A stretch of DNA of 64,000 nt, counting the filler, from Hyphochytrium catenoides (taxonomy: Eukaryota > Protista > Hyphochytriomycota): NCBI GenBank assembly GCA_900088475.1. It is 14 parts of 14 records of this genome, joined end to end, with 100 filler letters (N's around TTAATTAATTAA, not from the genome) between each part and the next. Parts side by side here need not be neighbours in the genome. Positions count along the whole stretch, not along the records: positions 9,295 to 21,125 come from FLMG01002347.1; 13 more parts are not named here. One strand, written 5' to 3'. The notes under the pieces were generated by a model that had not been told where the DNA came from, did no database searches, and was given only the letters and a program-made list of their open reading frames with translations. A program made the position numbers and the translations under genes. Shown in pieces: positions 9,295 to 25,849 of this stretch; within the stretch, counting starts at the first letter, position 1; each line of letters begins with the position of its first letter.

Positions 9295-9675
9295 TTTGGC
9301 ACGCAAAGAACTGCCCGACACGCGGGAGAGGCGACATTTCTCTCCGCTCATATATATAGCGCATGGCGGTGCACCATGCACGGCGTCTGGCCTCTGCTCA
9401 TAGAAGAACGCATAGATCAACCTAACTTGATCTGCCACCTCCTCCCTCCTGAGGACCCTTTCCGTCATAACAGCAGCCGCACTTCTGGTAGATAATCCTT
9501 GGGCGTAAGATACACTTTCCCTGGCAAGTCGATGATTTTTGCTATCTGAATAGGGAGTGTTGCCAGCGGAAAAATCTCGAGGACCAACTTCAATTGAGGC
9601 TCCATAGTTTACCTCCCGTTGAGCTTGATACCTCACATGTGCCCTTATCGGAAGAGGCCTCTGAGTGTCAAACAT
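9295..9675 (-). CDS. Probable C-terminal tail segment of the YR-RecQ gene, truncated by the contig end
   Basis: Same strand, just downstream of the large ORF. AAAVMTERVLRREEVADQVRLIYAFFYEQR...PPCAIY aligns with GAAAREEVIRRNVTCRKLHLIQQFLFEERR...PPCAFC of ORF 42763. Confidence 0.55.
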
Positions 9676-9950
9676 GATACGTGTGCTTTGGTATAGACTT
9701 ACCGGGGGATTGGAAGGGGGTTGTCCTCTCTTATGAAGATCTGTTACCTCATCCTGTCAGAGATAGAAACCTTTAAGTATAGGGAGCTATTGGCTCTGCA
9801 GGTGCTAGTGCTAATTTGATACGAGTTATATAGCCCACCTGGTCTAGTTGTACAGCATGTCGTCGCTGTTTTGAACGGCATTCAGCCATCATTGCCTGTG
9901 CCTCTATTCGATGTTCGAAGAGTTCCTAATAGATTTCGTGAGGTAGTTGT

Positions 9951-9966
9951 CTAACCCTAACCCTAA
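9951..9966. repeat. Short interstitial telomere-type repeat (CCCTAA)~2.7
   Basis: ctaaccctaaccctaa. Confidence 0.6.
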
Positions 9967-10318
9967 TACCACCATTGTTTTTCAGACGCTGCTTAGTTGA
10001 GTCTTAAGGACTGACCTGAAAAGTAAGATTGTGCTCATTTGATCCTCGTAAGGTCCCTTCTTCCATTATATCTGCACGAGACCGCATAACCCCATCGGAA
10101 GGAGGACACTAAGGAGGTTGTGTATTGAAGAGAGTTTTTAGCACTTCCGTCACCAGGGTCATAGGGCAATATGAACGAACTTACGTTGTCACCCCCTGAT
10201 GTCCGCTCTTGCGAGCGTGCATTCATCCCATGTAGATTTTCGCCAGTATGTTGTGCTTCATGCGAGTAGATTCTACCTCGTCCATCCCTAACATTGGCCA
10301 CTAGTGAATTCAAGAGCT

Positions 10319-13300
10319 TCACAAAGCGAGTCCAGCGCTAGAAGTAGCCTTGCCTTTTCTCCATGACCATAAACTGGATTGAACAATAGTCACAAAGATG
10401 CACTCCGGGTGAGCAAAGCAGTTAACAGATATACCATCCAAGCGATCCTGGAGCTGCACACGGCGGCACCGGTCAGTGGTCAACCAGTCACAGAATTCTT
10501 CGAATATCTTAAAGCGCGATAGCTGGAGTTTGTCGTGTGACACAGCAATTTCCTCTAGTTGGGACCGTCGTTTGCTTAGCTCCTTGGCAATCAGATCGTG
10601 GCTAGAAATAATAACTGCGGTACTCAGTTTTCCGTCCCTTCCCGCTCTACCGCTCTCCTGAGCGTAGTCTAACAGCGAGTCTGAGTAGCCGAGGTGAATT
10701 ACTATCCTCACTCCCGCTATGTCGACACCCATACCCAAGGCTTTCGTTCCAGCCAGAAATTGTAGTTCGCCTTCCATCCAGCGCTTCAACTGCTTTGATT
10801 TGGTCTGCCGCTGCAGTTCTCTTTCTTCTGCAGAACTCGCTCGTGGAGAAGAATCCTCCCCGCCAGCAGGTGCAGATGAGTATGCCCGATTCTCCTCCAC
10901 AAACTTGACTTCCTCTGGGGTGATTGACGCATGATAAACAGATATTTTGATCCCCTTTGATGCACCCATTCGCCCCACTTGCTGGCAGACGGCCTTAGTA
11001 GGACAAAAGATAATGCCCCTCTCGCATCTGTTGAGCTTTCTGGACTCGGCAAGGACTCTATCAACAACTGGAGCTACAAGTAGATCCAATGGCTTTGGTG
11101 CGGGAGGTGCACCGGTCCAACCTAGATTATTATCCTCCCATATAACTTGATAAGACAGTTCTTTCCTTGAAGTCTGCCCACGGAAGACAGTGAGAGGGCT
11201 ACCAAGCCCTTGCGCAATCTCTGACTCCATACAAGCGGGCAATGTCGCTGTCAAGAGTAGGAAGGGAACCTGTACTTGCCTTAGGAGCATCAATTCACTT
11301 AAGCAAGGTCGAAAGTCAGCCCACATCCAAAGCAAATGAGCTTCTTCCAGAACAATTCTAGCCAGGTGGCCTCCTATTGCCAAGGTTTGGCAGTATCGAG
11401 CGAAGTGAGCTGAAGCAGCAACCTCCGCTGATACAAAGAGGAGGCCCACCTTTTCGTAGATGCCATCTCTCGTCCCCGGCGGAATGGTGGCGTAGTCTTT
11501 CGCAGTCAGACCCATAGCTGTCGCACGTCTTAGAAGGTCCTGCATGAGGGCGACAAGAGGTACTACGATTATGGTAAGCAGATTCCTTTCTTTGTGCTCC
11601 ACATGTACAGGCACAAAGTAGGTCATGGTCTTCCCTCCTCCTGTTGGTAGCACCGCAAGGATGTCAGCTTGACGTTTTAGGGCTGCAACACAAACCAAAC
11701 ATTGCTCTTGAGAGACGAATGAGGCATCTGGAGTTCCAAGTAGGTCTTGTAAAGCCATCAATGCCTCCGTCGTAAGCTTTTCCGAAAGAGGATCCGTAAG
11801 AATGGAGCTGTGTACAACTCCCTTACTTACACCGGACAACATGCGGTAAGCCTGGTTGCTGTCAAATCTAGCTTCCATCTGCGTAAGATATGCTCGCACG
11901 TCCGCTACAACGCTATCCAAGTAGGAAGTCGAGGGAGGGCTACCGCCACGGACGTCCGACTTATGCAAGGTGTGTATACTAGAAAGTCTGTTCCGTTGTC
12001 CCAAAGCCTGCGAATGATGAAGTACAGTGGATGGCCTTTGTGAAGTGTTTTCAAGATAAGCTTCCAACTTCTCAAATTGTAAAAAATTCCACCAAAGGGA
12101 AGAACAGAGGTGAAACCGAGCTAGGTCTTCTGAAGTAAGAGCGCGCAGGTCCATGGCGCTACGACCATATTTAATTGCCTCAGTCAGCTTTGTGTGACCG
12201 GCTTGCTCTGCGAACGGGAGAGACGGAAGGTTTGCAACCTTTGGATAGATATGGGCCTTCAGTAAAGCTACCGTGAGATGCCGATAGTCTGCTAGGGTTA
12301 GCCTTGTTTTGGTAGCTCTTCGAAACTCCCTCTGGAACACATATCTTACCTGTTGAGCAGGCATCACATGGGCACCACTTACAAACAAATACGTTAGGTA
12401 CAGGTTGGCGATACTCTTCTCTTTTTTTGGGTTGAGCTTCATGGCAAAGAGGACTTCCACAGGACGAATGATAGCCAGGTATGTCACCAGCATCATGGTG
12501 AGCTTCACAGGAAGAAATCTGGCTATGCATACGTCTCTGTGTACAAGACGAGTCACCTTATTATGCTCAACCAAGAGCATCATCCGATTACCCTGCAAGT
12601 AGTATAGTCCGCGATGTCCACCTGATAGATTTTCAGCTATACGTAAGGTCACGAGCTCGGTTCCTCTTGCCGGTTGACCACTAAGTAAATGTATCAGCAC
12701 CAGGAGTACGTCACGGAATCGGTCACAGCTCCCCATATATCCCTTCATCCAGGACCTGTTCCACATTCTCGTAGAAGTATCAGAGATAAACTGAACCTTA
12801 AATCGCTCATGGTTCATAAGAGCCATCCGAACGCTAGCCTTGGAAGGATCCGTAAGGAAAGAATATCCCCGCTGACGACACGTAAGGTCATCCCTCCAAG
12901 GTTGTTGCAAGAGCCGAGATGAATCAAGCTCTGAGACAGGAATCCCTAGCAGCAGCCTCTTCTCAAGTAAGTCCTTTGCTACTTTGAAGAGATAAGTTAC
13001 AGCAGCCCGTAACTTTTCAACTGAGATCTCCTTGCCATTGACACACAGCGTCATCAGCAAGTTATCTCCAGCCCATATAACTTGGGGGATCTTTTCTCTG
13101 CGCTTGGTGATGGCTGACGCTAGAAGCATGACATTCCGGATGGCCTGAAATGGTGTGTTTCTTCCATCCTTTATCCACTTAAGCAGGCCATAATACGCAG
13201 CGATAGATTGGGCGATGGTATCATCTTCCTCTGCCTCTGTCGTTCCGTCAGCCTGTGGCATCGCTACCACGGGAACGCCAACATTTAGGAGATCTTCTGC

Positions 13301-15805
13301 CCGTTGGGGTTCTGAACTGAAGTTCGGCCAATTAAGTTCAAGGACTACCGCGCTTCGAATAGCATACTGTAATGCTGCACATTTTGCAGTTATATCTGCT
13401 ACCTTGCCGTACTTGAGAGTTGAGTCTAGGTTGGAGTACATAATATAATTGATTACCGGAAACTGTTCCTCACGCCGCGGAGAACAAAGTGGCAGCTCTA
13501 CGAAGAATAGAGCAGTGAGCGTCTTGTGCAAAGCAAGAGACAGTTTTTTCTTCTCACTGGGACCTAGACTTGGCCAGCAACCGTCACTCCCGGCTGGTGT
13601 CATGTCAACGTTTCTCAACAGTTGAAGGAGGCTATGACACTCTTGGTTCAATTGATCTGAGAGCTGCACGTCCGAGAGTTCAGCCAGTTCTTGGTCTTCA
13701 TAGCAGCGCATGACGAAAGTGGTGAAACATGCAAGGGATAGGGCATAGCGACGCAGAGCGCCTCCTTGCACGGCTGTGAAGACAGATGGGTTGTGCCCCT
13801 CCGAACTTGGGTTTGCGATATGCTGTCGTGCTAGTAATGCGAGTGACGGGATGGCACTCTTGGCAGTGAAGAGGTATTCTTCACAGAGTACAACCAGGAG
13901 GGACAGCGGATCTGGCACTAGAGAGGGCCGGCAAGCTTCAGATATTCGACCAAAACCATTCCTGTCTATCTTTTCAAGCCATCCCAAAGTAGCTAGTAAG
14001 TTAGACATCAATCTTGTATCCTGTACTTCCTCAACCCTCAGTATGTCGCTATCCATATGCTCCAAGGTGTCTAACCACAGGCTAGCGATGGGACTGACGT
14101 CCCCTGTGTGAGGCCGTAGTAGAGAGTCCGCTGCCTCGCTCCCGTCTTCATCTATCGACCAAGGTATATGATGGGGCTCACATCGACATATGACTGGGAA
14201 GTATTTAGCATAGGGTCCTGACAACCCTAAGCGCTGCACCTTACTTTCCATGAAGGCAAACGGGAGTCCTATTGTCTGGCCGGCCTGATCCTGAAGGTTA
14301 CCAGAAGAAGTAAAGGGCTTTCCATGGCGGTGTCGTTGGTACTTGTGTTGTTTCAAGGAACTTTGCTCTCGACAGCAAAACGCCACATCCGACACACAAG
14401 CTGTACAGGAGTATCCGCTGAACACTGGCAAGCCTGTAAAGCACGGCACTGCTGCCTGCGGGGTGGAGGATTGGCTTGGGTCGGTACCTGATCGGACTCG
14501 AGTGAAAGCAGCCTCAATTGCTTCATTAGTCTCAGTCTTCTGTGGTAGTACATATAAGAGCTCCATTTCAGGCTGCCGCAAGAGGCTTTCCCGGACATCG
14601 TGATGACTGGTAAGATGTTGAGCCAGTTTATGCTGGTCGAAGAAAGCAATCCCACAATTCGTACAGCAAACGGCTCGTAAGGAGGGATTCCATATGAGTG
14701 TTAATCCCTGTATGACAAAAGTTCCAACGTGGGTTGTTGGCTGAGGTCTTTCTGCCCTTGATTCAATACGTGGCTCTTCAGCTTCTGTATCCATTTGCTG
14801 AGTGGAAGCCTGTTGTTCTTGCCCCTCCTTACTTTCGCAATCCTCTCTCCGGCATCGGCCATTCGGAGAGGGTACCGATCCTCCTGCACTGATAGCTGTG
14901 GGGCACATTGGCGATGAAGAATGTCGGAGTTGATCACACCGTCCTTGCTGAGCATGTCGCTGAAGACTGGCTGCGGACTGATAAGCCGAGGGACAGTGCA
15001 AGCAGTTGAACAGCAGAGATTGAGGATTCCGTCTCACTACAAGTGGGGACGACTGAGGATAGTTCACCGTTGTGCTCATTTGATGATTGTTTCTCACATG
15101 AGTCTTTCTCTCGCTATTGGAGGAGAATGACTCTCCGCAATGATCACACGTGATTTTTTCTCTAAAAGTCCTAGTGTCGTGAATGTTTTCATCTTGGTCT
15201 TCGGGATCTTTCTGCGAGGATGAAGAGAGATCCGATCGAGCATCAGCCCTACTGGCGCCATTGGGACCGTACTGGGATGTCCCTGAACGAGACACGGAAG
15301 GAGTGATAGCAGAAAGGGCAGGACAAGAAGGTGAACTGGCGGTAGAAGTACCGTGCGTTTGGGACTCTATGCTCTCTTCTTCTCGTCCTAAGTCCACTCC
15401 GACTCCGTGGCCACCTTCTTCTGCGTCGGGCTCAGCATTCATAAGAGGCTTTGCGCATTTTTTAGCATGGCGCTGTAGGCCTGAAGGAGTCTCATAAGAG
15501 CTGGTGCCACACCCTAAGCATGGAAAGCGTCCTGTATTAGCGTCCCTTATGACCCTTACTTCCTCGTCAGCACCCGAAAATCTAACAATCGCGGAGGGCT
15601 GATGACTGTTCCGGATATGGGTTTTCCTGGCGCTGTAAGTTGGAAACTGGGCCAAACATGAGTCACATTTATAGTATGCCGCTGTAGAAACACCAGTCGC
15701 AGCAGTTATTGTGCCAGTGGGGGCTGTCCCAGAAATAGATCCAACGGTAGCAAAGTCTGCAGCGGGTTGAGTATGCTGTAACTCTACTCTGTACTCCTCC
15801 GTCAT
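10319..15805 (-). CDS. Large intronless protein: C2H2 fingers + DUF3505/OrsD-like domain + tyrosine-recombinase-like domain + RecQ-family helicase (Tlh-like); ~1,828 aa from ATG 15805 (frame open from 16054)
   Basis: Two pairs of C2H2/C2HC fingers; WNPSLRAVCCTNC...GLPVFSGYSCTAC...HKYQRH; GQPARGTEL...HNK...YLAIIRP...YLF...DYRH...QAGH...KYG; RecQ motifs LPTGGGKT, VVPLVALMQD, VLEEAH..WADFRP, LTATLP, GIIFC, YHA, TKALGMGVD, YAQESGRAGRDG, CRR. Confidence 0.92.
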   Translation of the reverse strand: MTEEYRVELQHTQPAADFATVGSISGTAPTGTITAATGVSTAAYYKCDSCLAQFPTYSARKTHIRNSHQPSAIVRFSGADEEVRVIRDANTGRFPCLGCGTSSYETPSGLQRHAKKCAKPLMNAEPDAEEGGHGVGVDLGREEESIESQTHGTSTASSPSCPALSAITPSVSRSGTSQYGPNGASRADARSDLSSSSQKDPEDQDENIHDTRTFREKITCDHCGESFSSNSERKTHVRNNHQMSTTVNYPQSSPLVVRRNPQSLLFNCLHCPSAYQSAASLQRHAQQGRCDQLRHSSSPMCPTAISAGGSVPSPNGRCRREDCESKEGQEQQASTQQMDTEAEEPRIESRAERPQPTTHVGTFVIQGLTLIWNPSLRAVCCTNCGIAFFDQHKLAQHLTSHHDVRESLLRQPEMELLYVLPQKTETNEAIEAAFTRVRSGTDPSQSSTPQAAVPCFTGLPVFSGYSCTACVSDVAFCCREQSSLKQHKYQRHRHGKPFTSSGNLQDQAGQTIGLPFAFMESKVQRLGLSGPYAKYFPVICRCEPHHIPWSIDEDGSEAADSLLRPHTGDVSPIASLWLDTLEHMDSDILRVEEVQDTRLMSNLLATLGWLEKIDRNGFGRISEACRPSLVPDPLSLLVVLCEEYLFTAKSAIPSLALLARQHIANPSSEGHNPSVFTAVQGGALRRYALSLACFTTFVMRCYEDQELAELSDVQLSDQLNQECHSLLQLLRNVDMTPAGSDGCWPSLGPSEKKKLSLALHKTLTALFFVELPLCSPRREEQFPVINYIMYSNLDSTLKYGKVADITAKCAALQYAIRSAVVLELNWPNFSSEPQRAEDLLNVGVPVVAMPQADGTTEAEEDDTIAQSIAAYYGLLKWIKDGRNTPFQAIRNVMLLASAITKRREKIPQVIWAGDNLLMTLCVNGKEISVEKLRAAVTYLFKVAKDLLEKRLLLGIPVSELDSSRLLQQPWRDDLTCRQRGYSFLTDPSKASVRMALMNHERFKVQFISDTSTRMWNRSWMKGYMGSCDRFRDVLLVLIHLLSGQPARGTELVTLRIAENLSGGHRGLYYLQGNRMMLLVEHNKVTRLVHRDVCIARFLPVKLTMMLVTYLAIIRPVEVLFAMKLNPKKEKSIANLYLTYLFVSGAHVMPAQQVRYVFQREFRRATKTRLTLADYRHLTVALLKAHIYPKVANLPSLPFAEQAGHTKLTEAIKYGRSAMDLRALTSEDLARFHLCSSLWWNFLQFEKLEAYLENTSQRPSTVLHHSQALGQRNRLSSIHTLHKSDVRGGSPPSTSYLDSVVADVRAYLTQMEARFDSNQAYRMLSGVSKGVVHSSILTDPLSEKLTTEALMALQDLLGTPDASFVSQEQCLVCVAALKRQADILAVLPTGGGKTMTYFVPVHVEHKERNLLTIIVVPLVALMQDLLRRATAMGLTAKDYATIPPGTRDGIYEKVGLLFVSAEVAASAHFARYCQTLAIGGHLARIVLEEAHLLWMWADFRPCLSELMLLRQVQVPFLLLTATLPACMESEIAQGLGSPLTVFRGQTSRKELSYQVIWEDNNLGWTGAPPAPKPLDLLVAPVVDRVLAESRKLNRCERGIIFCPTKAVCQQVGRMGASKGIKISVYHASITPEEVKFVEENRAYSSAPAGGEDSSPRASSAEERELQRQTKSKQLKRWMEGELQFLAGTKALGMGVDIAGVRIVIHLGYSDSLLDYAQESGRAGRDGKLSTAVIISSHDLIAKELSKRRSQLEEIAVSHDKLQLSRFKIFEEFCDWLTTDRCRRVQLQDRLDGISVNCFAHPECIFVTIVQSSLWSWRKGKATSSAGLAL

Positions 15806-16285
15806 CCTTTCCAGCGAATTTGGGAGAGTGTGATGATGCCTGGAGACTCCGAAAGCAAAACAGCTGAATAGAGGAGGAGGATGATTGGGAACGCAAATGG
15901 AAGAGGAAGAACCTTCAGTGCAAAACTTATAGGTAGGAAAAATGAACAGCTGAGACAAAGAGAGTTGACTGACAGAGACACCAAGCACCGAATGGAGGAT
16001 GAAGAAACAAACGTAGTAGAGGAATGTCCCGCAGTAAAAAGCAGACTTACACACGGTGGTAGAGGCCCGGCCGGGTTCGCCGTTAGTGGTTCAGACACTG
16101 TGAAGAAAGTGTGCCGCGAACCTGCAGCAGAGGAAGAAAAGGGTAGCGCAGGAGAACTGCAGTAGAACGCAGAAAAGCCGACGCATTATGCTTTGAAGAA
16201 CCCTTGTGGTACGTGTACAAGTGGTGGGCTCTACTTGACACGAAGGCTGTTCCCCCCACCACCCGTAGTTTCCTTGGCTAATACG

Positions 16286-16407
16286 GGCAACTTCGGCTGG
16301 TGCGGCTTCCCCTGCTGCTGAGGCACGTCAGGTTCTGCTGCTGAGGCAACTTCTGCTGCTGCGGCTTCCCCTGCTGCTGAGGCACATCATGTTCTGCTGT
16401 TGAGGCA
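16286..16407. repeat. Two tandem ~59-bp units in the divergent intergenic region
   Basis: ggcaacttc(g/t)gctg(g/c)tgcggcttcccctgctgctgaggcac... starts at 16286 and again at 16345. Confidence 0.85.
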
Positions 16408-16790
16408 TTTGTAAGACCCTGTTGTCAAGCAGTCACTAATGACCGATTACTACTTGTAGAACTACAATATTGTTTTCAGAAACATCTCAAGTGCATGTAA
16501 GTTCTAGGAAGACAGATAAACAAGTCCTGAAAATTAAGTAAGTACAAGTCAAGATTGAGATAGAACTAGACAAGTCCTTCATCCTCACTCCTCCCGGTAC
16601 TTTCGCTGGATAAAATTCAGGTACAAGTACTCGCGGCACCCAACATCTGCTGTGACAATTCTGCTGGTGGTGCGGCCTGTCCTGCTGCTGCTGCGGCCAG
16701 CACGTTCCGCTGCTGAGGCAGTTGTTGCAGGAGAGCCAAACAAGAGGCAGGAGGTGGCGCGGGAGGAGAGAGAAGGTGCTGTAGTAGAGT

Positions 16791-18170
16791 ATGAGCACTG
16801 CTTCTGAACCCTACCTAAGCAAGACACCGAAAGAAGACAAAGCAGGAGCCAGTGCTGAACAGCTGAAGCGCAACCCTAGGATGACTCAGCAGCAGCAGCA
16901 GAGGAAGAAAAAGCGGCACCGCAAGCTGTGTGATGTGGAGGGTTGCACAAGAACAAGAAGATCAAAAGGAAGCAAATGCCAGCGGCATGCCAGGCAAGCT
17001 GGTATTGCATGCGTACAGTGTGAGGTTCCAGATTGCAACAAAAACGCCCGATCTAGAACGAAAAAGTGTGCGAAGCACGCAAGACTTCTGGATCGCGATT
17101 ATAGGCCACCAACTTGCAGACTTTCAGGATGCGGACGGTATCCTAGGAAGTTAGGGCGCTGTACGTTCCATCTTCGGCATCAAGATGATGATGAACAACA
17201 GCAGCATCCAGCGACTCAGGAACAAAGTCACTGTGAGCAGGAGCAACCACCGCGGCCTGCGGAGCCTCGATACGAGCATCCACCTCCAGAGCGGCGAGAA
17301 GAAAGGCCAAATCTTTTCGAGCAGGGTGAAGAAGAGCCTAGGTATCCCTCAGAGGCTCCGGCCGTGGTGGTGGGAGACGAAACCCACCAGTCTCTTCACG
17401 AGGAGCAGCGCTATCTTACTGCAAGAGATACCAAACATGATGTGGGCTGTAATACGAAGCTGACTGACAAAGAGCTGATCTCTGGCGGTGAGAGTATCCG
17501 GCCGCTAACAACTGAAGAGAGGGAATGGGTCAAGCATGCTATCTTCGACAAATCTTGGAGAAGGAACTACGAGGGCCGCACGCTGATAGCGGCAGGCTAT
17601 GCTGACTTGGATGGACTGAGCGTGTTCGTAAGATCCGAGGACCTAAAGGAGGTGAGCCGGGGGGATATTATCTCCGCAGAGGTGATCGACATGTGGATGC
17701 TCATGTTAGCTCAACGTTATCAGGACTGTAAATTTTACCGCGTACACAGGGCCCACGAGCTTCCATCTGAACTCCCTACATACATCCTAGGTCAGCGTCT
17801 CTTCATCCCCGTAGTCCTACAGTATACCAAGCCCCATCCCCACTTTGTACTGTACTACTTGGAGGATGAACAGCTATTTTTCCTCAACAGTAGTAGTAGC
17901 CTGGATAGCGAGGTTATCAAATGTGGAAGGGAGCTGTCTAGGAGGATTAAAAGAAGTGTGAGCCAAGGGGCAACAAGAGAACTGAAACCAATCAAGATGA
18001 AATGTTCGCCCCAAAGCAACAGCTATGATTGTGGTGTGCTAATCTGCCTCTTTGCCTATTACATAGCTAGCCGTATTGCCCCACCAGTGTTCTCACAACG
18101 ACACAGAGGAGATGAACACCTCATCAGAGATTGGTACTTGTATAAGATACTAAACTTCATGAATGTGTGA
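16791..18170 (+). CDS. Ulp1/SENP-like (peptidase C48) cysteine protease with three N-terminal Cys/His repeats
   Basis: CDVEGC..CQRH, CEVPDC..CAKH and CRLSGC..CTFH repeats plus a basic NLS-like RKKKRHRK. Protease: ISAEVIDMWM, LFIPV, PHF (His), FLNS (Asn at the Asp position), PQSNSYDCGVLIC (Gln/Cys). Confidence 0.88.
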   Translation: MSTASEPYLSKTPKEDKAGASAEQLKRNPRMTQQQQQRKKKRHRKLCDVEGCTRTRRSKGSKCQRHARQAGIACVQCEVPDCNKNARSRTKKCAKHARLLDRDYRPPTCRLSGCGRYPRKLGRCTFHLRHQDDDEQQQHPATQEQSHCEQEQPPRPAEPRYEHPPPERREERPNLFEQGEEEPRYPSEAPAVVVGDETHQSLHEEQRYLTARDTKHDVGCNTKLTDKELISGGESIRPLTTEEREWVKHAIFDKSWRRNYEGRTLIAAGYADLDGLSVFVRSEDLKEVSRGDIISAEVIDMWMLMLAQRYQDCKFYRVHRAHELPSELPTYILGQRLFIPVVLQYTKPHPHFVLYYLEDEQLFFLNSSSSLDSEVIKCGRELSRRIKRSVSQGATRELKPIKMKCSPQSNSYDCGVLICLFAYYIASRIAPPVFSQRHRGDEHLIRDWYLYKILNFMNV

Positions 18171-18595
18171 CTTTGTCAGTAGGACCCTCCACGAAGCTTG
18201 GTATCTTCAAAGGCTCATCATATTTCTTTGCACATCTTCCTTTCCTGCTACGACAATGGTTTGCGTCTGTTTCTCTTCCTATCATCCATATTCCATGTCG
18301 CAATATTCCTTTCTTGTTGGCGCTTCAGATTGCAAGGCACTAAACTGTATTTTTCTTAACAGCAAATTCTAGTTGCCTCTCTCGCTCTTTCTCCCTTCTC
18401 TCTCACAACCTCGTTCTTCATTTTTTTCCATTCGACATTCGACGATACCAACTAGTACTACTACTATCAGAAAGAGCAAGAGGAAGAAGGAGGAGAAGAA
18501 AGAAGAAGAAGAAGAAGGGAAAGAGGAAGAGCAAGTCTTAGTCTCTTAAACTCCTCACCCTATGCAACAGGAATAGGAGAAGGAGGAAGGGAAGG

Positions 18596-18768
18596 TAAAA
18601 ACACCAAGGGTTGGGGCCAGGATGAGGGCAGGCCATCATAACTCTCGACAAGCTAAAAACACCAAGGGTTGGGGCCAGGATGAGGGCAGGCCATCATAAC
18701 TCTCGACAAGCTAAAAACACCAACGGTTGGGGTTAGGATTAGGCAGGCCATCATAACTCCCGACAAGC
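18596..18768. repeat. Three tandem 58-bp units
   Basis: taaaaacaccaagggttggggccaggatgagggcaggccatcataactctcgacaagc at 18596 and 18654, with a diverged copy at 18712. Confidence 0.95.
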
Positions 18769-19757
18769 CAAGTAAGGGGGGAGTTCCAAACAACTACTGA
18801 AGAGGAATACGCTTCAGGACCCTAAGAGCATTTCTTCATGCATGTCCAACAAAACTCTGTAAAGAAGGCTTAGAACCATTGCCAGACGAGACCAATGACC
18901 ATGAACCAAGCCGAGAAGCATCAAGTGTAGAGCCATCGCATCGATGATTTACAAGCCGCTTCCACACAGTCAAGGACACGGGGCATAGCAACCCCCCCCC
19001 CCAAAAGACTCCATAATCTGCTGGTCGTTAGGGACACACGGTAAAATGACTGCATCCGGGCTTGTTGATGGTTCTATCTTTATCTGTAATAAAAAGTTGG
19101 GAGACATGAGCGTGGAGGTAAGTTTGCAGATTTCTTTATACGAAGCGAAAGAGAGCAGAGCAGGAACACAGAGGAACTTCCGTAAATAGAGGAAGAAGTA
19201 GGAGAACCATGTCAAAAAGAGGGAAACAGCTGAGATCTGCAGAGGAGTACGGAGATAGAGAGAGAGAAACCTTCGAGGCAAAATGATCGTTTCGGAAGGC
19301 TTTCTCCTAGGCCGGAGTCTCCGACTAGCGCAGTCTCTCCGTAATGCTCTTTTCTTTCTCCATCTTGTCTCAATCTCCACCAACCTTCTTTATTGTTATT
19401 CGTAAACTCTTTCGTGCCTCCCCTCTCGGTGAGAAATAAACGTGTGCTCCGGTCGGAGGAGTTGCATTGCTGGGAGGGTTGGAAAAGCGGTACTCTGGGG
19501 CAAACTGATGATGAGGGTAGTGTGCACGCTGTAGTTCTAGTGCTGATAGGAAGTGGGAAGAAACAAGTGAGCGAGAGAGAGCAAAGAGAGAGCAGAGGGA
19601 AAGAGACAGACAGACAGAGCGAGAAAGCACGAGAGAGGAAGAGAGAGATGGCCTTCAAGAAGAGAGAAAGCGGAAGAGAGACAGCAGCCACCACCAGTAC
19701 AATGTACGAGGTGCGTGGATTTTGATAGAGCCTGTTTTTTGACCCTGCGAGCTGACT

Positions 19758-20312
19758 GATTCCTTAGACAGAGTCCATCTCCTAAGCCTGTCATTTGTTT
19801 AGCAATCCCACACCATTGAAAGCCACATACAAAGTAAGAGATGCGGGATTCCGATTTAAGCCCTTGTATTGACGTTGCGAACTGGAGGATTCCTTAGACA
19901 GAGTCCATCTCCTAAGCCTGTCATTTGTTTAGCAATCCCACACCATTGAAAGCCACATACAAAGTAAAAGATGCGGGATTCCGATTTAAGCCCTTGTATT
20001 GACGTTGCAAACTGGAGGATTCCTTAGACAGAGTCCATCTCCTAAGCCTGTCATTTGTTTAGCAATCCCACACCATTGAAAGCCACATACAAAGTAAGAG
20101 GTGCGGGATTCCAGTTCAAGCCCTTGTATTGACCTTGCAATCTAGAGGATTCCTTAGACAGAGTCCATCTCCTAAGCCTGTCTCTTGTTTAGCAATCCCA
20201 CACCATTGAGAGCCACATTCAGAGTAAGAGGTGCGGGATTCCAATCTAAGCCCATGTATTGACCTTGCGACCCAGAGGATTCCTTAGACAGAGTCCGCCC
20301 CCTAAGCCTGTC
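19758..20312. repeat. 130-bp tandem array, ~4.3 copies
   Basis: gattccttagacagagtcc... restarts at 19758, 19888, 20018, 20148 and 20278. Confidence 0.97.
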
Positions 20313-20456
20313 TTTTGTCCTGCGATCCTGCATGGAATCCCCATACTTTCCAGGCTTTTGAGTCATTCCACCTTCCCTGGGTCGCATGGAATCCCGGGTC
20401 GCAGGCCTAATGACTGCGAAAGTGGGGTATTTACTGGTCATTCGTCTCTCGCATTA

Positions 20457-21125
20457 TTATAGGGTTGTTGGATCGTGCCGGGGGAGGCGCTCCTCCGCGG
20501 TGTGTTCAGAGCTTGTACTACTTATCTGGAAAGCTACAGGAGATCGAGGCTGCCTGATGCTTTGGCCACTAGTCAAGGTTGCAAGACCAGCCTGAATTTT
20601 GTCTCTCCGCTCTCTCCTATCAGCCTCGTCCACCAGTGTGGACATGAGGGACGCTGGAGTTTGAACAGTTCTATCAGGAACGCACTTCATCGCCAGGATA
20701 AAGCTGTCATAGCTCTTCGGCAAGCTGTTGAAGAGTCTCAAGACAAAGTCACCGGCTCCCACCGCATACGGTGTCTCATCTAGGTTGTTCCTTAGATCCA
20801 TCAAGTCTCCCAATTGTCTTTTGACAGATCCTCCTTCTGCTAACTTGGAGATTCAGGAATCTCATCTTCAAGACTTCTGGGTCGTCATTCCCGTTGTTCT
20901 GGTAGACTTCCTGTAAGGCCTGCCATGCTTTTCCAGGGGTGCTCATCCCTTTCACGTACACTCTCTGTGCCTTCTCAATGGTCATGTATATGTAGGCATA
21001 AGCTCATTCTGCAGCTTCCTCTGTCTTGGGATCATATGAGTAGGATTCTTTCTTGTCCAGCGGTATCAGCTTTAGACCTTCCAACAGTTCTCCTTCCGGA
21101 GGACGTGCTCCATCTCATATGCCCA
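20457..21125 (-). pseudogene. Ty1/Copia gag (UBN2-type) remnant, frameshifted
   Basis: TPGKAWQALQEVY...LKMRFLNL and VLRLFNSLPKSYDSFI...L.DEADRR in overlapping frames. Confidence 0.8.
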
Positions 21126-23095: not shown

Positions 23096-25849
23096 ATGGA
23101 GACTTCTGAGGCTGTGTGGCGGGTGCTGCCTTCCAGGTATGCCGGCAGGACTGAGAACCCGATTAGGAAGATTGTCGACAACATCAAGAAGCCCGAAAAT
23201 TCAGAGAAAGCCCTGATCCCTCTCTCTCTCGGTAGGCAGATGTTTCGACTTGAGAACCCTATCGTAGAACCTCTTTTATATTTCTCTGTCTTTCTTGCTC
23301 ACTTTCTCTGTCCTCTTTTACTCTCTTTTCCTGTCTTTGTCTCTGTCTCTGTCTCCCTTCTCACTCTCTCTCTTCTTCGGCAACAGCGCATTCTCTTCAG
23401 TTAGTTTCTCTTTACTCTCTCATGCCGCGTTGTAGGTCTTTCTACCGCCGTTCTCAAGCTTGTGTCTCTCTCTACCTCATCAATCGCGTAGGTGATCCCA
23501 CGGTCTTTCGCAACCTTCAGGCCCCGGAAGTGCTGGTGGAGGCGATTGTCAAGCATGTCCGGTACGGCCAGACATGGACAGTACGAGAGGAACGCCACCA
23601 GATGGCACTGTCTGTCTTCCTTCTCGCGCTTCTCGGTTGCTCTCTCTCTCAATCACACACATTGTGTGTGTCTCTCTCTGTCTCTCCGTCTCTCTCCCTC
23701 TCTCTTTGTCTCTCTTCCTCTTTCTTCTCTCCCCTCTTCCTCTCTCTCTCTCCTCCCTCAACTCCGACGTTCTCCTCTGTCTCTTCTTACCTTCTCTCTA
23801 CATCTCTCTTCTTGAACTCATGCTCTCTTTACGCTGCTTTTCCAGAAGCATATTCTTTATATTTACATCACAAGCGCACTTTCTTCTCCTGCTACCTGCT
23901 GGCCTCTTATTTTTTTCCCCCTCTCTCGACGTCTATACAGTTTCTGTCTCGTTCCTTCTTCTGTTTCTCACCCGCCTTTCATGTCTCTCTTCCACAGCTC
24001 TGGCAATGCGAACGGGTATGTCCATTCCTCGGGAACCCCTGACGCTCGAGAAGCTGTGGCTAAATGCTACGAGACGCCAACCTCTCCTCTCTCCGCTCAG
24101 GATGTGATCCTGACCTCCGGCTGCTCCGGCGCACTAGAGATCGCCATCTCTGGTCTGGCAGACGAAGGAGACAACATTCTCCTCCCTTCTCCAGGGTTTG
24201 CCCTGTATCAAGTCATCGCTCAGTCTCGGGGGATCTCCTGTCGCTTTTATGACTTACTGCCTGAAAAGAACTGGGAGGCGGATGTGGAGCACATGAGCTC
24301 TCTTATTGACGAGCGGACGCGGTTCATTCTGGTGAACAACCCCTCTAACCCTTGCGGAAGCGTGTACTCCCAGCAGCACCTCCGAGAGATTTTGCAGCTC
24401 GCCGAGGAGCGTAAGGTGCCCATAGTCGCGGTAAGCTCAGATGGAGAGACGGGAGGGACCTCGATCTTTCAGCCCTTTATCCTTCCTCTCGTTTCCTCTC
24501 TTGAGGTCTTTCAGCTCCTAACGCGGTCCGCTGACGCTCCACTTTCAGTGCTTGTCCATCTTCTCTCTTTCACTTTCTATCCATTTTTCGGGAGGCTCTA
24601 TTCTAAAGATGGAAGCTTGTACAAGTTCCGTTGTGAAAACTAATGGGCTCTCTAACCTTCGTTGCATTCCTGCTCTGCCTTCTTGTGAGCAGGATGAGAT
24701 ATATGGCACCATGACCTTCCATGGCAGTGTGTTCCACCCTCTTGCGTCCCTTACATCCTCCGTACCCGTCATCTCTGTCGGCGGGCTGGCCAAGCAGTAT
24801 CTGGTGCCTGGCTGGAGGCTAGGCTGGATTCTTATTCATGACAGGAATAATGTCCTTCAAGAGGTGAGAGGACCAAGTAGAAGGAGGAGACAAGAGTAAG
24901 AGCGGTGACAGAGGCGAGTCAATCTAGTGAGAGACCTCGATGGTTAAGGCGGTACAACGGGCATGCTTCTCTTCTAAAACCTACAGAGTTGAACCTTGAG
25001 TTATTTAAACAGTGCATTAGGATGTATCCTAATGTTCCTATTTTTCCTTCCCGGTCCCTCTCCTTGGTCTTGCGTAGGTGCGGAAGGGGCTTCTAAGCCT
25101 CACGCAGCTGGTACTAGGCCCCTGTTCCATCCTTCAGGCAGCGCTGCCTGATGTTCTAACGCCTGTCAAGGGCTCATCGGAGGAGCAGCAGCTGCGGGAT
25201 AACTATGAAAAGTACCTCCAGACGCTGGAGGAAAATGCCACCCTCACAGTGGACCGATTAGGAATTATACCTGGCCTCCGCGTCGTGGTGCCGCAGGGCA
25301 CCATGTACGCCATGGTAAGGACAGGGCGAGGCGTTAAGGCGCGTCAAAAAGCTTTTTTCCTTTCTTCTCTAACACTTACAACTCCATCTTTCTCGTTATA
25401 TCATCTCTCTGCCTCTAATCCTTTGCTGTGCTACTTTGTCTAGATTGAAATGAATCCTTCCTCTTTCGAGGACATCAAGAGCGACACAGAGTTCACACAG
25501 AAGCTGCTCGACGAGGAAAGCGTCTTTGTCCTCCCTGGACAGGTAAGTCTACGTTTGTGAAAGTTCTCTTCTCATTCTTGGCCCTTATTTGCCACTGCTA
25601 TTTATCTTCGCGGACGCGAGCTTGGTTGACTTCTGACTGTTTTCGCTTCTTAAACGTCCCCGCTATCCCCAGTGCTTCCGCATCAAGAACTACTTTAGGG
25701 TCGTGTACAGCGCACCAAAGGAAAGACTGGCTGAAGCGTACGATAGAATCGCAGCGTTTTGCTCACGACATGCAAGTAAGAAGGCGGCAGGAGTGCCCGG
25801 GACTGAGCTGAGGCGTACCTCGTCCTGCACGGATGAAGAAAGTGACTGA
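23096..25849 (+). CDS. TAT: Tyrosine aminotransferase (PLP class I/II); exons 23096-23231, 23492-23561, 23998-24430, 24693-24863, 25078-25314, 25444-25542, 25673-25849
   Basis: NPIRKIVD, IPLSLGDPT, DVILTSGCSGAL, NNPSNPCGSVYS, ADEIYG, GGLAKQYLVPGWRLGW (PLP Lys), PQGTMYAM, EESVFVLPGQCF; six GT-AG introns keep the frame. Confidence 0.95.

Follow-up and report, generated by a model that had tools for sequence, protein, structure and literature searches.

A probable telomere-linked helicase gene with a predicted tyrosine-recombinase fold in Hyphochytrium catenoides

We analyzed a stretch of 64,000 nucleotides (nt) from Hyphochytrium catenoides (assembly GCA_900088475.1), in which 14 parts of the genome are joined end to end; we call this whole stretch the window, and all positions are counted along it. 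Our subject is a long open reading frame (ORF) in the part taken from FLMG01002347.1 (9295-21125, the positions covered by all sequence searches). We assign a probability of roughly three in four to the reading that this ORF of 1828 amino acids (aa) belongs to the telomere-linked helicases (TLHs), a family that includes Schizosaccharomyces pombe Tlh1 and Tlh2, other fungal TLHs and, more distantly, Y'-Help1, and that it lies in a repeat-rich, subtelomere-like stretch. Upstream of its RecQ helicase, the protein has a domain with a predicted tyrosine recombinase (YR) fold that keeps the full R-K-R-H-Y set of catalytic residues. On this reading, the locus adds one more gene to a family already described, and a new class of transposon is not supported. 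An earlier interpretation (the sequence-only reading) had proposed such a class, formed by this gene and a divergently oriented gene for an Ulp1-like protease about 1 kb away.

Architecture and family membership

The frame is open over 10319-16054 on the minus strand and, counted from its first ATG at 15805, has no internal stop, which bears out the intronless ORF of about 1,830 aa described in the sequence-only reading. The features of the locus are collected in Table 1. Pattern scanning places the six finger motifs at aa 47-68 (15602-15667), 96-117 (15455-15520), 220-241 (15083-15148), 268-290 (14936-15004), 381-402 (14600-14665) and 467-492 (14330-14407). Pfam reports a zf-C2H2 match at aa 219-241 and an OrsD/DUF3505 match at aa 370-492, within which the fifth and sixth fingers fall. 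The helicase is matched by Pfam DEAD (aa 1372-1523) and Helicase_C (aa 1664-1725) and by NCBIfam recQ_fam (E 3e-39). In a sequence search of the PDB, its best matches are chains of human RECQL5 (1.6e-28), followed by bacterial RecQ, BLM, RECQL1 and WRN; the RECQL5, RecQ and BLM chains span 1e-28 to 1e-20. The proposed order of fingers, DUF3505-like zinc domain, helical region, YR-like domain and RecQ helicase is therefore confirmed; the Cys-rich tail that was thought to complete it is not intact. An exact look-up in protein records found neither this protein nor the Ulp1-like one.

Table 1. Coordinates of the features of the locus, with the evidence for each
Feature	Position	Strand	Evidence
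TLH-family ORF: zinc fingers, helical linker, YR-fold TLH domain, RecQ helicase	10319..15805	-	ORF scan, Pfam, family profile, Foldseek
Six C2H2/C2HC finger motifs	14330..15667	-	pattern scan (Cx2C...H..H/C)
Predicted YR-fold domain = TLH domain, aa about 870-1250	12056..13198	-	AlphaFold2 model, Foldseek, VIA, alignment
Catalytic candidates	R1047 12665-12667; K1083 12557-12559; R1175 12281-12283; H1204 12194-12196; Y1213 12167-12169	-	alignment
RecQ-type superfamily 2 helicase core, aa about 1365-1790, including start of zinc-binding CRR...C motif	10436..11713	-	Pfam, PDB, NCBIfam
Frameshift site; family motif Cx8CDxC split between two frames (NCFAHPE in ORF frame, GVHLCDYCS in another)	10380..10415	-	translation, tblastn, profile
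Telomere-type repeat CTAACCCTAACCCTAA (CCCTAA x2.7), 16 nt	9951..9966	+	repeat scan
Divergent intergenic region, 985 nt, with 59-nt and 18-nt CTGCTG-rich tandem repeats (16286-16407)	15806..16790	.	repeat scan
459-aa intronless ORF, three zinc repeats and C-terminal Ulp1/C48-like domain (about 17500-18167)	16791..18170	+	ORF scan, weak C48 evidence
58-nt tandem repeat x3, G-rich GGGTTGGGG / GGGGTTAGG stretches	18592..18768	.	repeat scan
130-nt satellite x4.3, raised and uneven assembler depth in runs	19758..20318	.	repeat scan, contig mapping
Copia-type long terminal repeat retrotransposon gag remnant, frameshifted into two ORF pieces	20460..20985	-	Retrotran_gag_2 3e-5 and 0.03

One indication of family membership comes from structure. 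When the model of the YR-like domain (aa 850-1290) was compared with AlphaFold models of reviewed UniProt proteins, the best match was S. pombe Tlh1 (E 4.2e-17, TM score 0.64, aligned over residues 648-1127 of 1887), followed by Tlh2 (E 1.1e-16, TM 0.55, residues 648-1120 of 1919). Eight copies of Saccharomyces cerevisiae Y'-Help1 were also matched (E 1e-9 to 1e-6, TM about 0.5-0.57), as were bacterial XerC, XerD and XerS (E 4e-4 and weaker, TM 0.24-0.34), the aligned part varying by copy or entry. The earlier suggestion that the nearest known proteins are telomere-linked helicases is thus upheld. Among AlphaFold DB cluster representatives, matches at about 1e-17 carry names such as "DNA 3'-5' helicase", "C2H2-type domain-containing protein" and "DEAD/DEAH box helicase", and one representative has been automatically named "Tyr recombinase domain-containing protein" in AlphaFold DB/UniProt.

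The architecture agrees with this assignment. TLH proteins have two N-terminal C2H2 motifs, of the patterns Cx2-3Cx8-14Hx3-5H and Cx2-5Cx11-16Hx4-5H, a TLH domain and a RecQ helicase, and they are known from fungi and from the choanoflagellate Monosiga brevicollis (bioRxiv 10.1101/2024.02.27.582403). All six fingers of the window protein closely fit these patterns, some with a terminal Cys instead of His, and the fifth and sixth, within OrsD, fit the two N-terminal ones. A further mark of the family is a TLH domain, at least about 250 residues long, that directly precedes the helicase, and the structural match to Tlh1 and Tlh2 places such a domain at this point in the window protein. Subtelomeric Fusarium proteins with DUF3505, DEAD and Helicase_C domains are on record in the literature.

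At the level of sequence, the nearest relatives are only about 30% identical to the window protein, and a word-indexed protein search with its middle region returned one relative. The named close relatives belong to early-diverging and higher fungi (Zychaea, Lichtheimia, Cladochytrium and Macrolepiota), and most others are metagenome or Logan proteins. The consensus of 34 long relatives has its parts in the same order as the window protein, with the addition of a C-terminal Cys-rich tail.

Predicted fold and active site of the TLH domain

Evidence for the recombinase fold comes from an alignment-based AlphaFold2 model of the YR-like domain, which has a mean predicted local distance difference test score (pLDDT) of 85 and a predicted template modeling score of 0.80. 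In a Foldseek search of the PDB with this model, the top 50 of 50 matches were tyrosine recombinases (XerA, Cre, XerH, lambda Int, IntI and Tn1549 Int). VIA-align gave Z scores of 12.1 to 8 against tyrosine recombinases, XerA, XerH and Cre among them, over 160-170 residues at about 3 Å. Type IB topoisomerases ranked next, then TelK (Z 5.4), and there was a sharp drop to unrelated folds (Z<4). A Pfam search of the window protein gave no tyrosine-recombinase match, and a profile of the domain found no match among PDB sequences, so the relationship is visible by fold comparison only. Of 47 family members, a single one matches Pfam Phage_integrase (2.4e-4).

To define the family, aa 560-1360 of the window protein was used as a HMMER query in an exhaustive search against cluster representatives (E<1e-3). 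It matched 2090 representatives, in every case on query positions of about 315-690, i.e., aa about 875-1250, and many of these proteins are 1400-1800 aa long with Walker A and DExH motifs downstream of the domain. The fusion of a YR with RecQ, which had been taken for a new architecture, is therefore the TLH architecture itself. Additional members were retrieved from metagenomes with a degenerate DNA pattern for GQPARGTEL, which gave 104 stretches, 65 of them carrying the YR/TLH domain.

The putative active site is highly conserved. In an alignment of 47 domain sequences, R1047, E1050, K1083, R1175 and Y1213 are invariant and H1204 is nearly so. Over 221 domain instances, the catalytic residues are kept in 211/213 (first Arg), 212/212 (Lys), 186/186 (second Arg), 180/183 (His) and 182/182 (Tyr) cases. 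Retrieval of the metagenome loci with a motif that contains the first Arg and the Glu has partly preselected these two residues there; the other four catalytic positions are free of this bias. Taken together, the confidence of the model, the uniformity of the structural matches and the near invariance of the catalytic residues bear out that a YR-like domain is fused to RecQ.

The damaged 3' end and a possible link to telomeres

The ORF ends immediately after the first Cys of the family motif Cx8CDxC, and CDYC carries on in another frame. This split indicates a frameshift near 10406-10415. A profile of the relatives' tails, applied to every frame, found no further match to their long CxxC/H tail, so the Cys-rich tail described for the protein is not intact. 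Weak tblastn matches to a "CF.C.LPGDW" motif at 9624-9773 (plus strand) were considered as a second, inverted tail fragment and were set aside, since the relatives' tail profile does not support them.

Beyond the gene, 352 nt past the helicase stop, lies CTAACCCTAACCCTAA, which is oriented as at a left chromosome end, such that the gene reads toward the repeat. Its relatives suggest what this arrangement may mean. Five of 70 relatives' loci end in TTAGGG/CCCTAA arrays, each with its gene pointing at the telomere, and in three of them, the telomere repeats cut the gene short. These five loci may include copies of a single element. Zychaea has two copies at contig ends, both reading outward. Three loci have telomere repeats joined directly to truncated TLH-domain ORFs (L049:11-76, L102:12058-12123 and L103:3-116); in L049 and L102 the join falls within the domain, and in L103 immediately downstream of it. 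Such joins are as expected from terminal erosion followed by healing. The orientation of the window gene relative to CCCTAA is the same as in L049 and L103. Given the frameshift, the absent tail and the CCCTAA block, the simplest reading would be that the gene was once truncated at a telomere or lay next to one, and that it has since become internal or belongs to a short contig of an unassembled chromosome end.

Several points weigh against this account of the gene and its family. Membership in the TLH family rests on the structural match between predicted models and on shared architecture, as opposed to a sequence alignment with Tlh1/2 or Magnaporthe oryzae TLH1. In the HxxR box, conservation does not extend to the canonical His, the window protein having DYRH at this place, and catalysis by any TLH domain is a prediction. 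The frameshift could be an assembly error, the contig mapping described below having spanned 14501-20500. The telomere linkage of the window copy itself is based on a repeat of only 16 nt. Finally, the frame is open over 5.5 kb upstream of the damaged 3' end, which speaks for a gene of recent origin or for continuing selection, and not simply for a decayed relic.

Relatives and variant forms

Not all relatives encode the helicase. Among 30 metagenome loci with room downstream of the YR/TLH domain, 10 have no RecQ helicase behind it (L086, L051, L074 and L033 among them), and the clusters of the protein atlas include proteins of about 900 aa with only OrsD and the YR domain. These two observations imply that the recombinase-like domain also circulates without the helicase.

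A number of individual relatives deserve mention. A 12-kb metagenome contig (L005:1-12025) with a TLH-like ORF of 1484 aa has an Illumina adapter at both ends, and could represent either an entire linear molecule or an artefact of the library; it also holds ORFs that weakly resemble DNA methyltransferases (N6_N4_Mtase/MTS). A Logan contig that ends in a long poly-T run (L002:1-7754) might be the reverse reading of a polyadenylated transcript, in which case the relative that it encodes (P0009, with OrsD, YR and RecQ in 1815 aa) is transcribed. A second ORF on this contig, of 513 aa and of no recognized family, begins 4 nt after P0009. On a 43-kb contig (L003:567-5160 and 23577-24032), the TLH-like gene is split over three adjacent ORFs, with a second DEAD-helicase gene 9.5 kb downstream and with neighbors that weakly match FAR1 DNA-binding and OTU-like cysteine-protease domains. 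Two close relatives of about 1500 aa with YR and RecQ (P0004 and P0153) were deposited as proteins of metagenome-assembled genomes of a "bacterium" and a "Gloeomargaritales cyanobacterium". Because the family is otherwise eukaryotic, these are probably eukaryotic contigs that were binned wrongly.

Possible function and significance

Earlier descriptions treat the TLH domain as a conserved motif whose role is unknown and which also occurs in the N-terminal part of Y'-Help1. The notable point here is that the domain has, across the family, a predicted YR fold and a nearly invariant active site, a link that databases detect only occasionally (one automatic UniProt name). No paper in the literature that we searched relates tyrosine recombinases to TLH or Y'-Help1, and publication in other journals is possible. 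Papers on Chlamydomonas and fungal transposons that name both RecQ and YR/Crypton were considered as precedents and rejected, as they treat the two as unrelated topics.

A YR active site suggests a testable way in which helicase genes at chromosome ends might act. The zinc fingers would place the TLH protein on DNA, the YR domain would cut and rejoin a strand through a 3'-phosphotyrosine link (via Tyr1213), and the RecQ motor would unwind or branch-migrate the resulting joint. Together, the three activities might promote recombination between chromosome ends, and such recombination could spread a gene cassette among the ends or help to rebuild eroded ones.

Two explanations for the presence of such an enzyme have to be weighed, and each should be regarded as tentative. 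Under the first, TLH proteins, and perhaps Y'-Help1, would be active YR-helicase enzymes of selfish chromosome-end cassettes. These would cut and join at or near telomere or subtelomere sequence, the helicase would drive strand exchange, and the cassette would be copied from end to end, incidentally rebuilding ends when telomerase fails. The window copy would then be the footprint of such an end, and the Ulp1-like gene could be a lineage-specific accessory. The helicase-less forms in 10 of 30 loci and the frequent truncation at telomeres lead us to lean toward fast-turnover, possibly selfish, DNA.

The second explanation, that TLH is a domesticated host gene, is an equally doubtful one as it stands. 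The protein would maintain chromosome ends, e.g., as a recombination-based backup to telomerase, and the YR would be kept for the benefit of the host, with no mobility of its own. This would suit the reported expression of Y'-Help1 in telomerase-deficient cells (papers cited in bioRxiv 10.1101/2024.02.27.582403), and the retention of catalytic residues across hundreds of diverged members implies long-term selection. The window copy also appears to be single at at least 90% identity. However, the family is patchy, multi-copy and often truncated at telomeres, and it includes YR-only and OrsD plus YR forms that have no helicase. Such a pattern is easier to reconcile with selfish or fast-turnover DNA than with a core function in the host.

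Should the domain prove catalytic, it would offer an experimental handle on how subtelomeric helicase cassettes spread among chromosome ends, and on the role of these cassettes in telomerase-negative survivors. If the genome is indeed non-fungal, the window gene is a TLH gene outside fungi, for which Monosiga is the precedent.

The Ulp1-like neighbor and the surrounding repeats

The divergent neighbor was described as an Ulp1 protease gene. An intronless ORF with three zinc repeats is present 985 nt away as described, and the Ulp1 identity of its product is weak but convergent. Pattern scanning finds the three N-terminal Cx4Cx10-11Cx2H repeats at 16929-17171. The Pfam C48 model (PF02902) scores 14.3 bits, below its cut-off of 20.7 (E 0.036), and aligns only the Cys box. 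The best phmmer matches in the PDB are Ulp1 (0.072), SENP8 (0.095) and SENP2 (0.56), and the SENP8 alignment spans the "LLVYL...FFHYDS" strand and "QQNSYDCG" box of SENP8. Candidate active-site residues are the His in "HPHF" at 17835, "LNSS" at 17883-17894 and the Cys box "QSNSYDCG" around 18024, in which the Cys of YDCG is residue 414. N366, in LNSS, is aligned with the Asp of the SENP8 "YDS", which we take to be the catalytic Asp. Thus, of the C48 His-Asp-Cys triad and oxyanion Gln, the Gln, the Cys and a candidate His are present, and the SENP8 alignment puts Asn at the Asp position. In a protein-language-model search, 76 of 100 neighbors belong to C48 families (top score 0.94, with 182 shared features), including C48 domains fused to hAT and Transposase_24 domains. 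A single-sequence AlphaFold2 model was unusable (pLDDT 37.7). Judging from its sequence, the product is probably a C48-fold protein of uncertain activity.

Word-indexed protein searches with the whole Ulp1-like protein or its C-terminal part detected no sequence relatives, and the pair of helicase and Ulp1-like gene is consequently a single observation. In the 72 relatives' loci, tblastn with the Ulp1-like protein gave no match and none of the ORFs has a C48 Cys box, such that the expected recurrence of the head-to-head pair was not seen; ten proteins neighboring the relatives' genes had no C48 match in Pfam. The two 513-aa neighbors of relatives on L002 and L003 were considered as counterparts and rejected, being unrelated to each other and to the Ulp1-like protein.

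Copy number was addressed by mapping Logan contigs of three DNA runs (X1, X2 and X3, from two samples) on 14501-20500. Assembler word depth is flat over the 5' part of the helicase gene, the spacer, the Ulp1-like gene and the flank up to 19500 (about 430-460, then 347, in X1; about 28-32 in X2). In the three runs, no contig other than the locus itself is at least 90% identical to 14501-16300, nor is there one on either gene, and internal tandem repeats are the only places where the mapped contigs break. Since word depth reflects copy number poorly and diverged paralogues would be missed, these data argue only against recent multiple copies. Within the zinc-repeat part (16947-17124), runs X2 and X3 hold two versions that differ at 7-8 sites and whose summed depth is about twice that of the flanks, while X1 holds only the version that is not in the window. 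This could reflect a second partial copy elsewhere or strain variation.

The surroundings look like subtelomeric or otherwise repeat-rich DNA. To the right of the gene pair, a GA-rich tract accompanies the 58-nt repeat and the 130-nt satellite. The 58-nt units contain GGGTTGGGG, and the third also has GGGGTTAGGATTAGG, a degenerate telomere-like string. No Rfam family and no tRNA was found in 9295-21125.

The Ulp1-like gene is a lineage-specific neighbor, and nothing shows that it works jointly with the helicase. It might derive from another transposable element, as its cargo or as what is left of it, inserted next to the TLH gene where repeats pile up in a subtelomere-like region, an idea that we consider unlikely, if worth keeping in mind. 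The copia gag relic, the satellite and the 58-nt repeat all lie within 3 kb, C48 domains are common in proteins of DNA transposons, and a second variant of 17012-17154, which doubles the depth in X2 and X3, hints at another partial copy. However, no transposase, terminal inverted repeats or target-site duplication were seen around the ORF, and over most of its length the depth equals that of the flank.

The proposal that both genes form one autonomous element of a new class, whose YR excises and integrates it and whose protease counters SUMO-dependent silencing, is very improbable: despite two long, intronless ORFs that lie head to head, an intact YR active site, repeat-rich surroundings and the frequency of C48 proteases as transposon cargo, neither direct nor inverted terminal repeats bracket the pair, the depth is the same on genes and flank, the three runs yielded no copy with an identity of 90% or more, the helicase gene is truncated at its 3' end, and neither a relative of the protease nor a second instance of the pair was detected. 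The Starship captain domain DUF3435 was likewise found neither in the window protein (Pfam E up to 0.1) nor among 47 family members (E up to 1).

Comparison with known systems

The closest counterparts of the window protein are the fungal TLHs (S. pombe Tlh1/Tlh2 and those of Magnaporthe, Fusarium, Ustilago and Metarhizium) and the TLH of M. brevicollis, which have the same order of C2H2 fingers, TLH domain and RecQ helicase. Tlh1/Tlh2 provide the best structural match of its YR-fold domain, and subtelomeric Fusarium proteins have the same Pfam combination of OrsD, DEAD and Helicase_C. As in its telomere-adjacent relatives, the gene reads toward telomere-type repeats. In contrast to TLHs, the window protein has an extra N-terminal pair of finger modules, making six in all, and has no C-terminal Cys-rich tail; its gene has no copy of at least 90% identity in the three runs, a telomere repeat of only 16 nt, and an Ulp1-like gene upstream.

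Y'-Help1, encoded by the subtelomeric and multi-copy Y' element of S. cerevisiae, is a more distant counterpart. Its segment on the N-terminal side of the helicase matches the YR-fold domain of the window protein (E 1e-9 to 1e-6, TM about 0.55) with an identity of 13-16%. The Y'-Help1 helicase is not usually classed as RecQ.

With YRs of the Xer/Cre type (XerA, XerH, Cre and lambda Int), the window domain has in common the predicted fold of the catalytic domain, at VIA Z scores of 10-12, and the pattern of R, K, R, H and Tyr nucleophile. Unlike them, it is fused to zinc fingers and RecQ, its first HxxR His is not conserved, and there is no match at the sequence level. Cryptons, DIRS elements and Starship captains encode a YR that is used, or proposed to be used, for integration and excision, whereas the window locus has no DUF3435 or reverse transcriptase match in Pfam, and neither repeated copies of at least 90% identity nor defined ends were found.

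For the neighbor, the relevant comparison is with Ulp1/SENP (C48) proteases. The Ulp1-like protein falls below the Pfam cut-off, has Asn for the catalytic Asp by alignment, yielded no sequence relatives in the searches, and carries an unusual N-terminal triple zinc repeat. What it shares with these proteases is the Cys box QSNSYDCG, the upstream His, a SENP8-like spacing, and language-model neighbors that are mostly C48.

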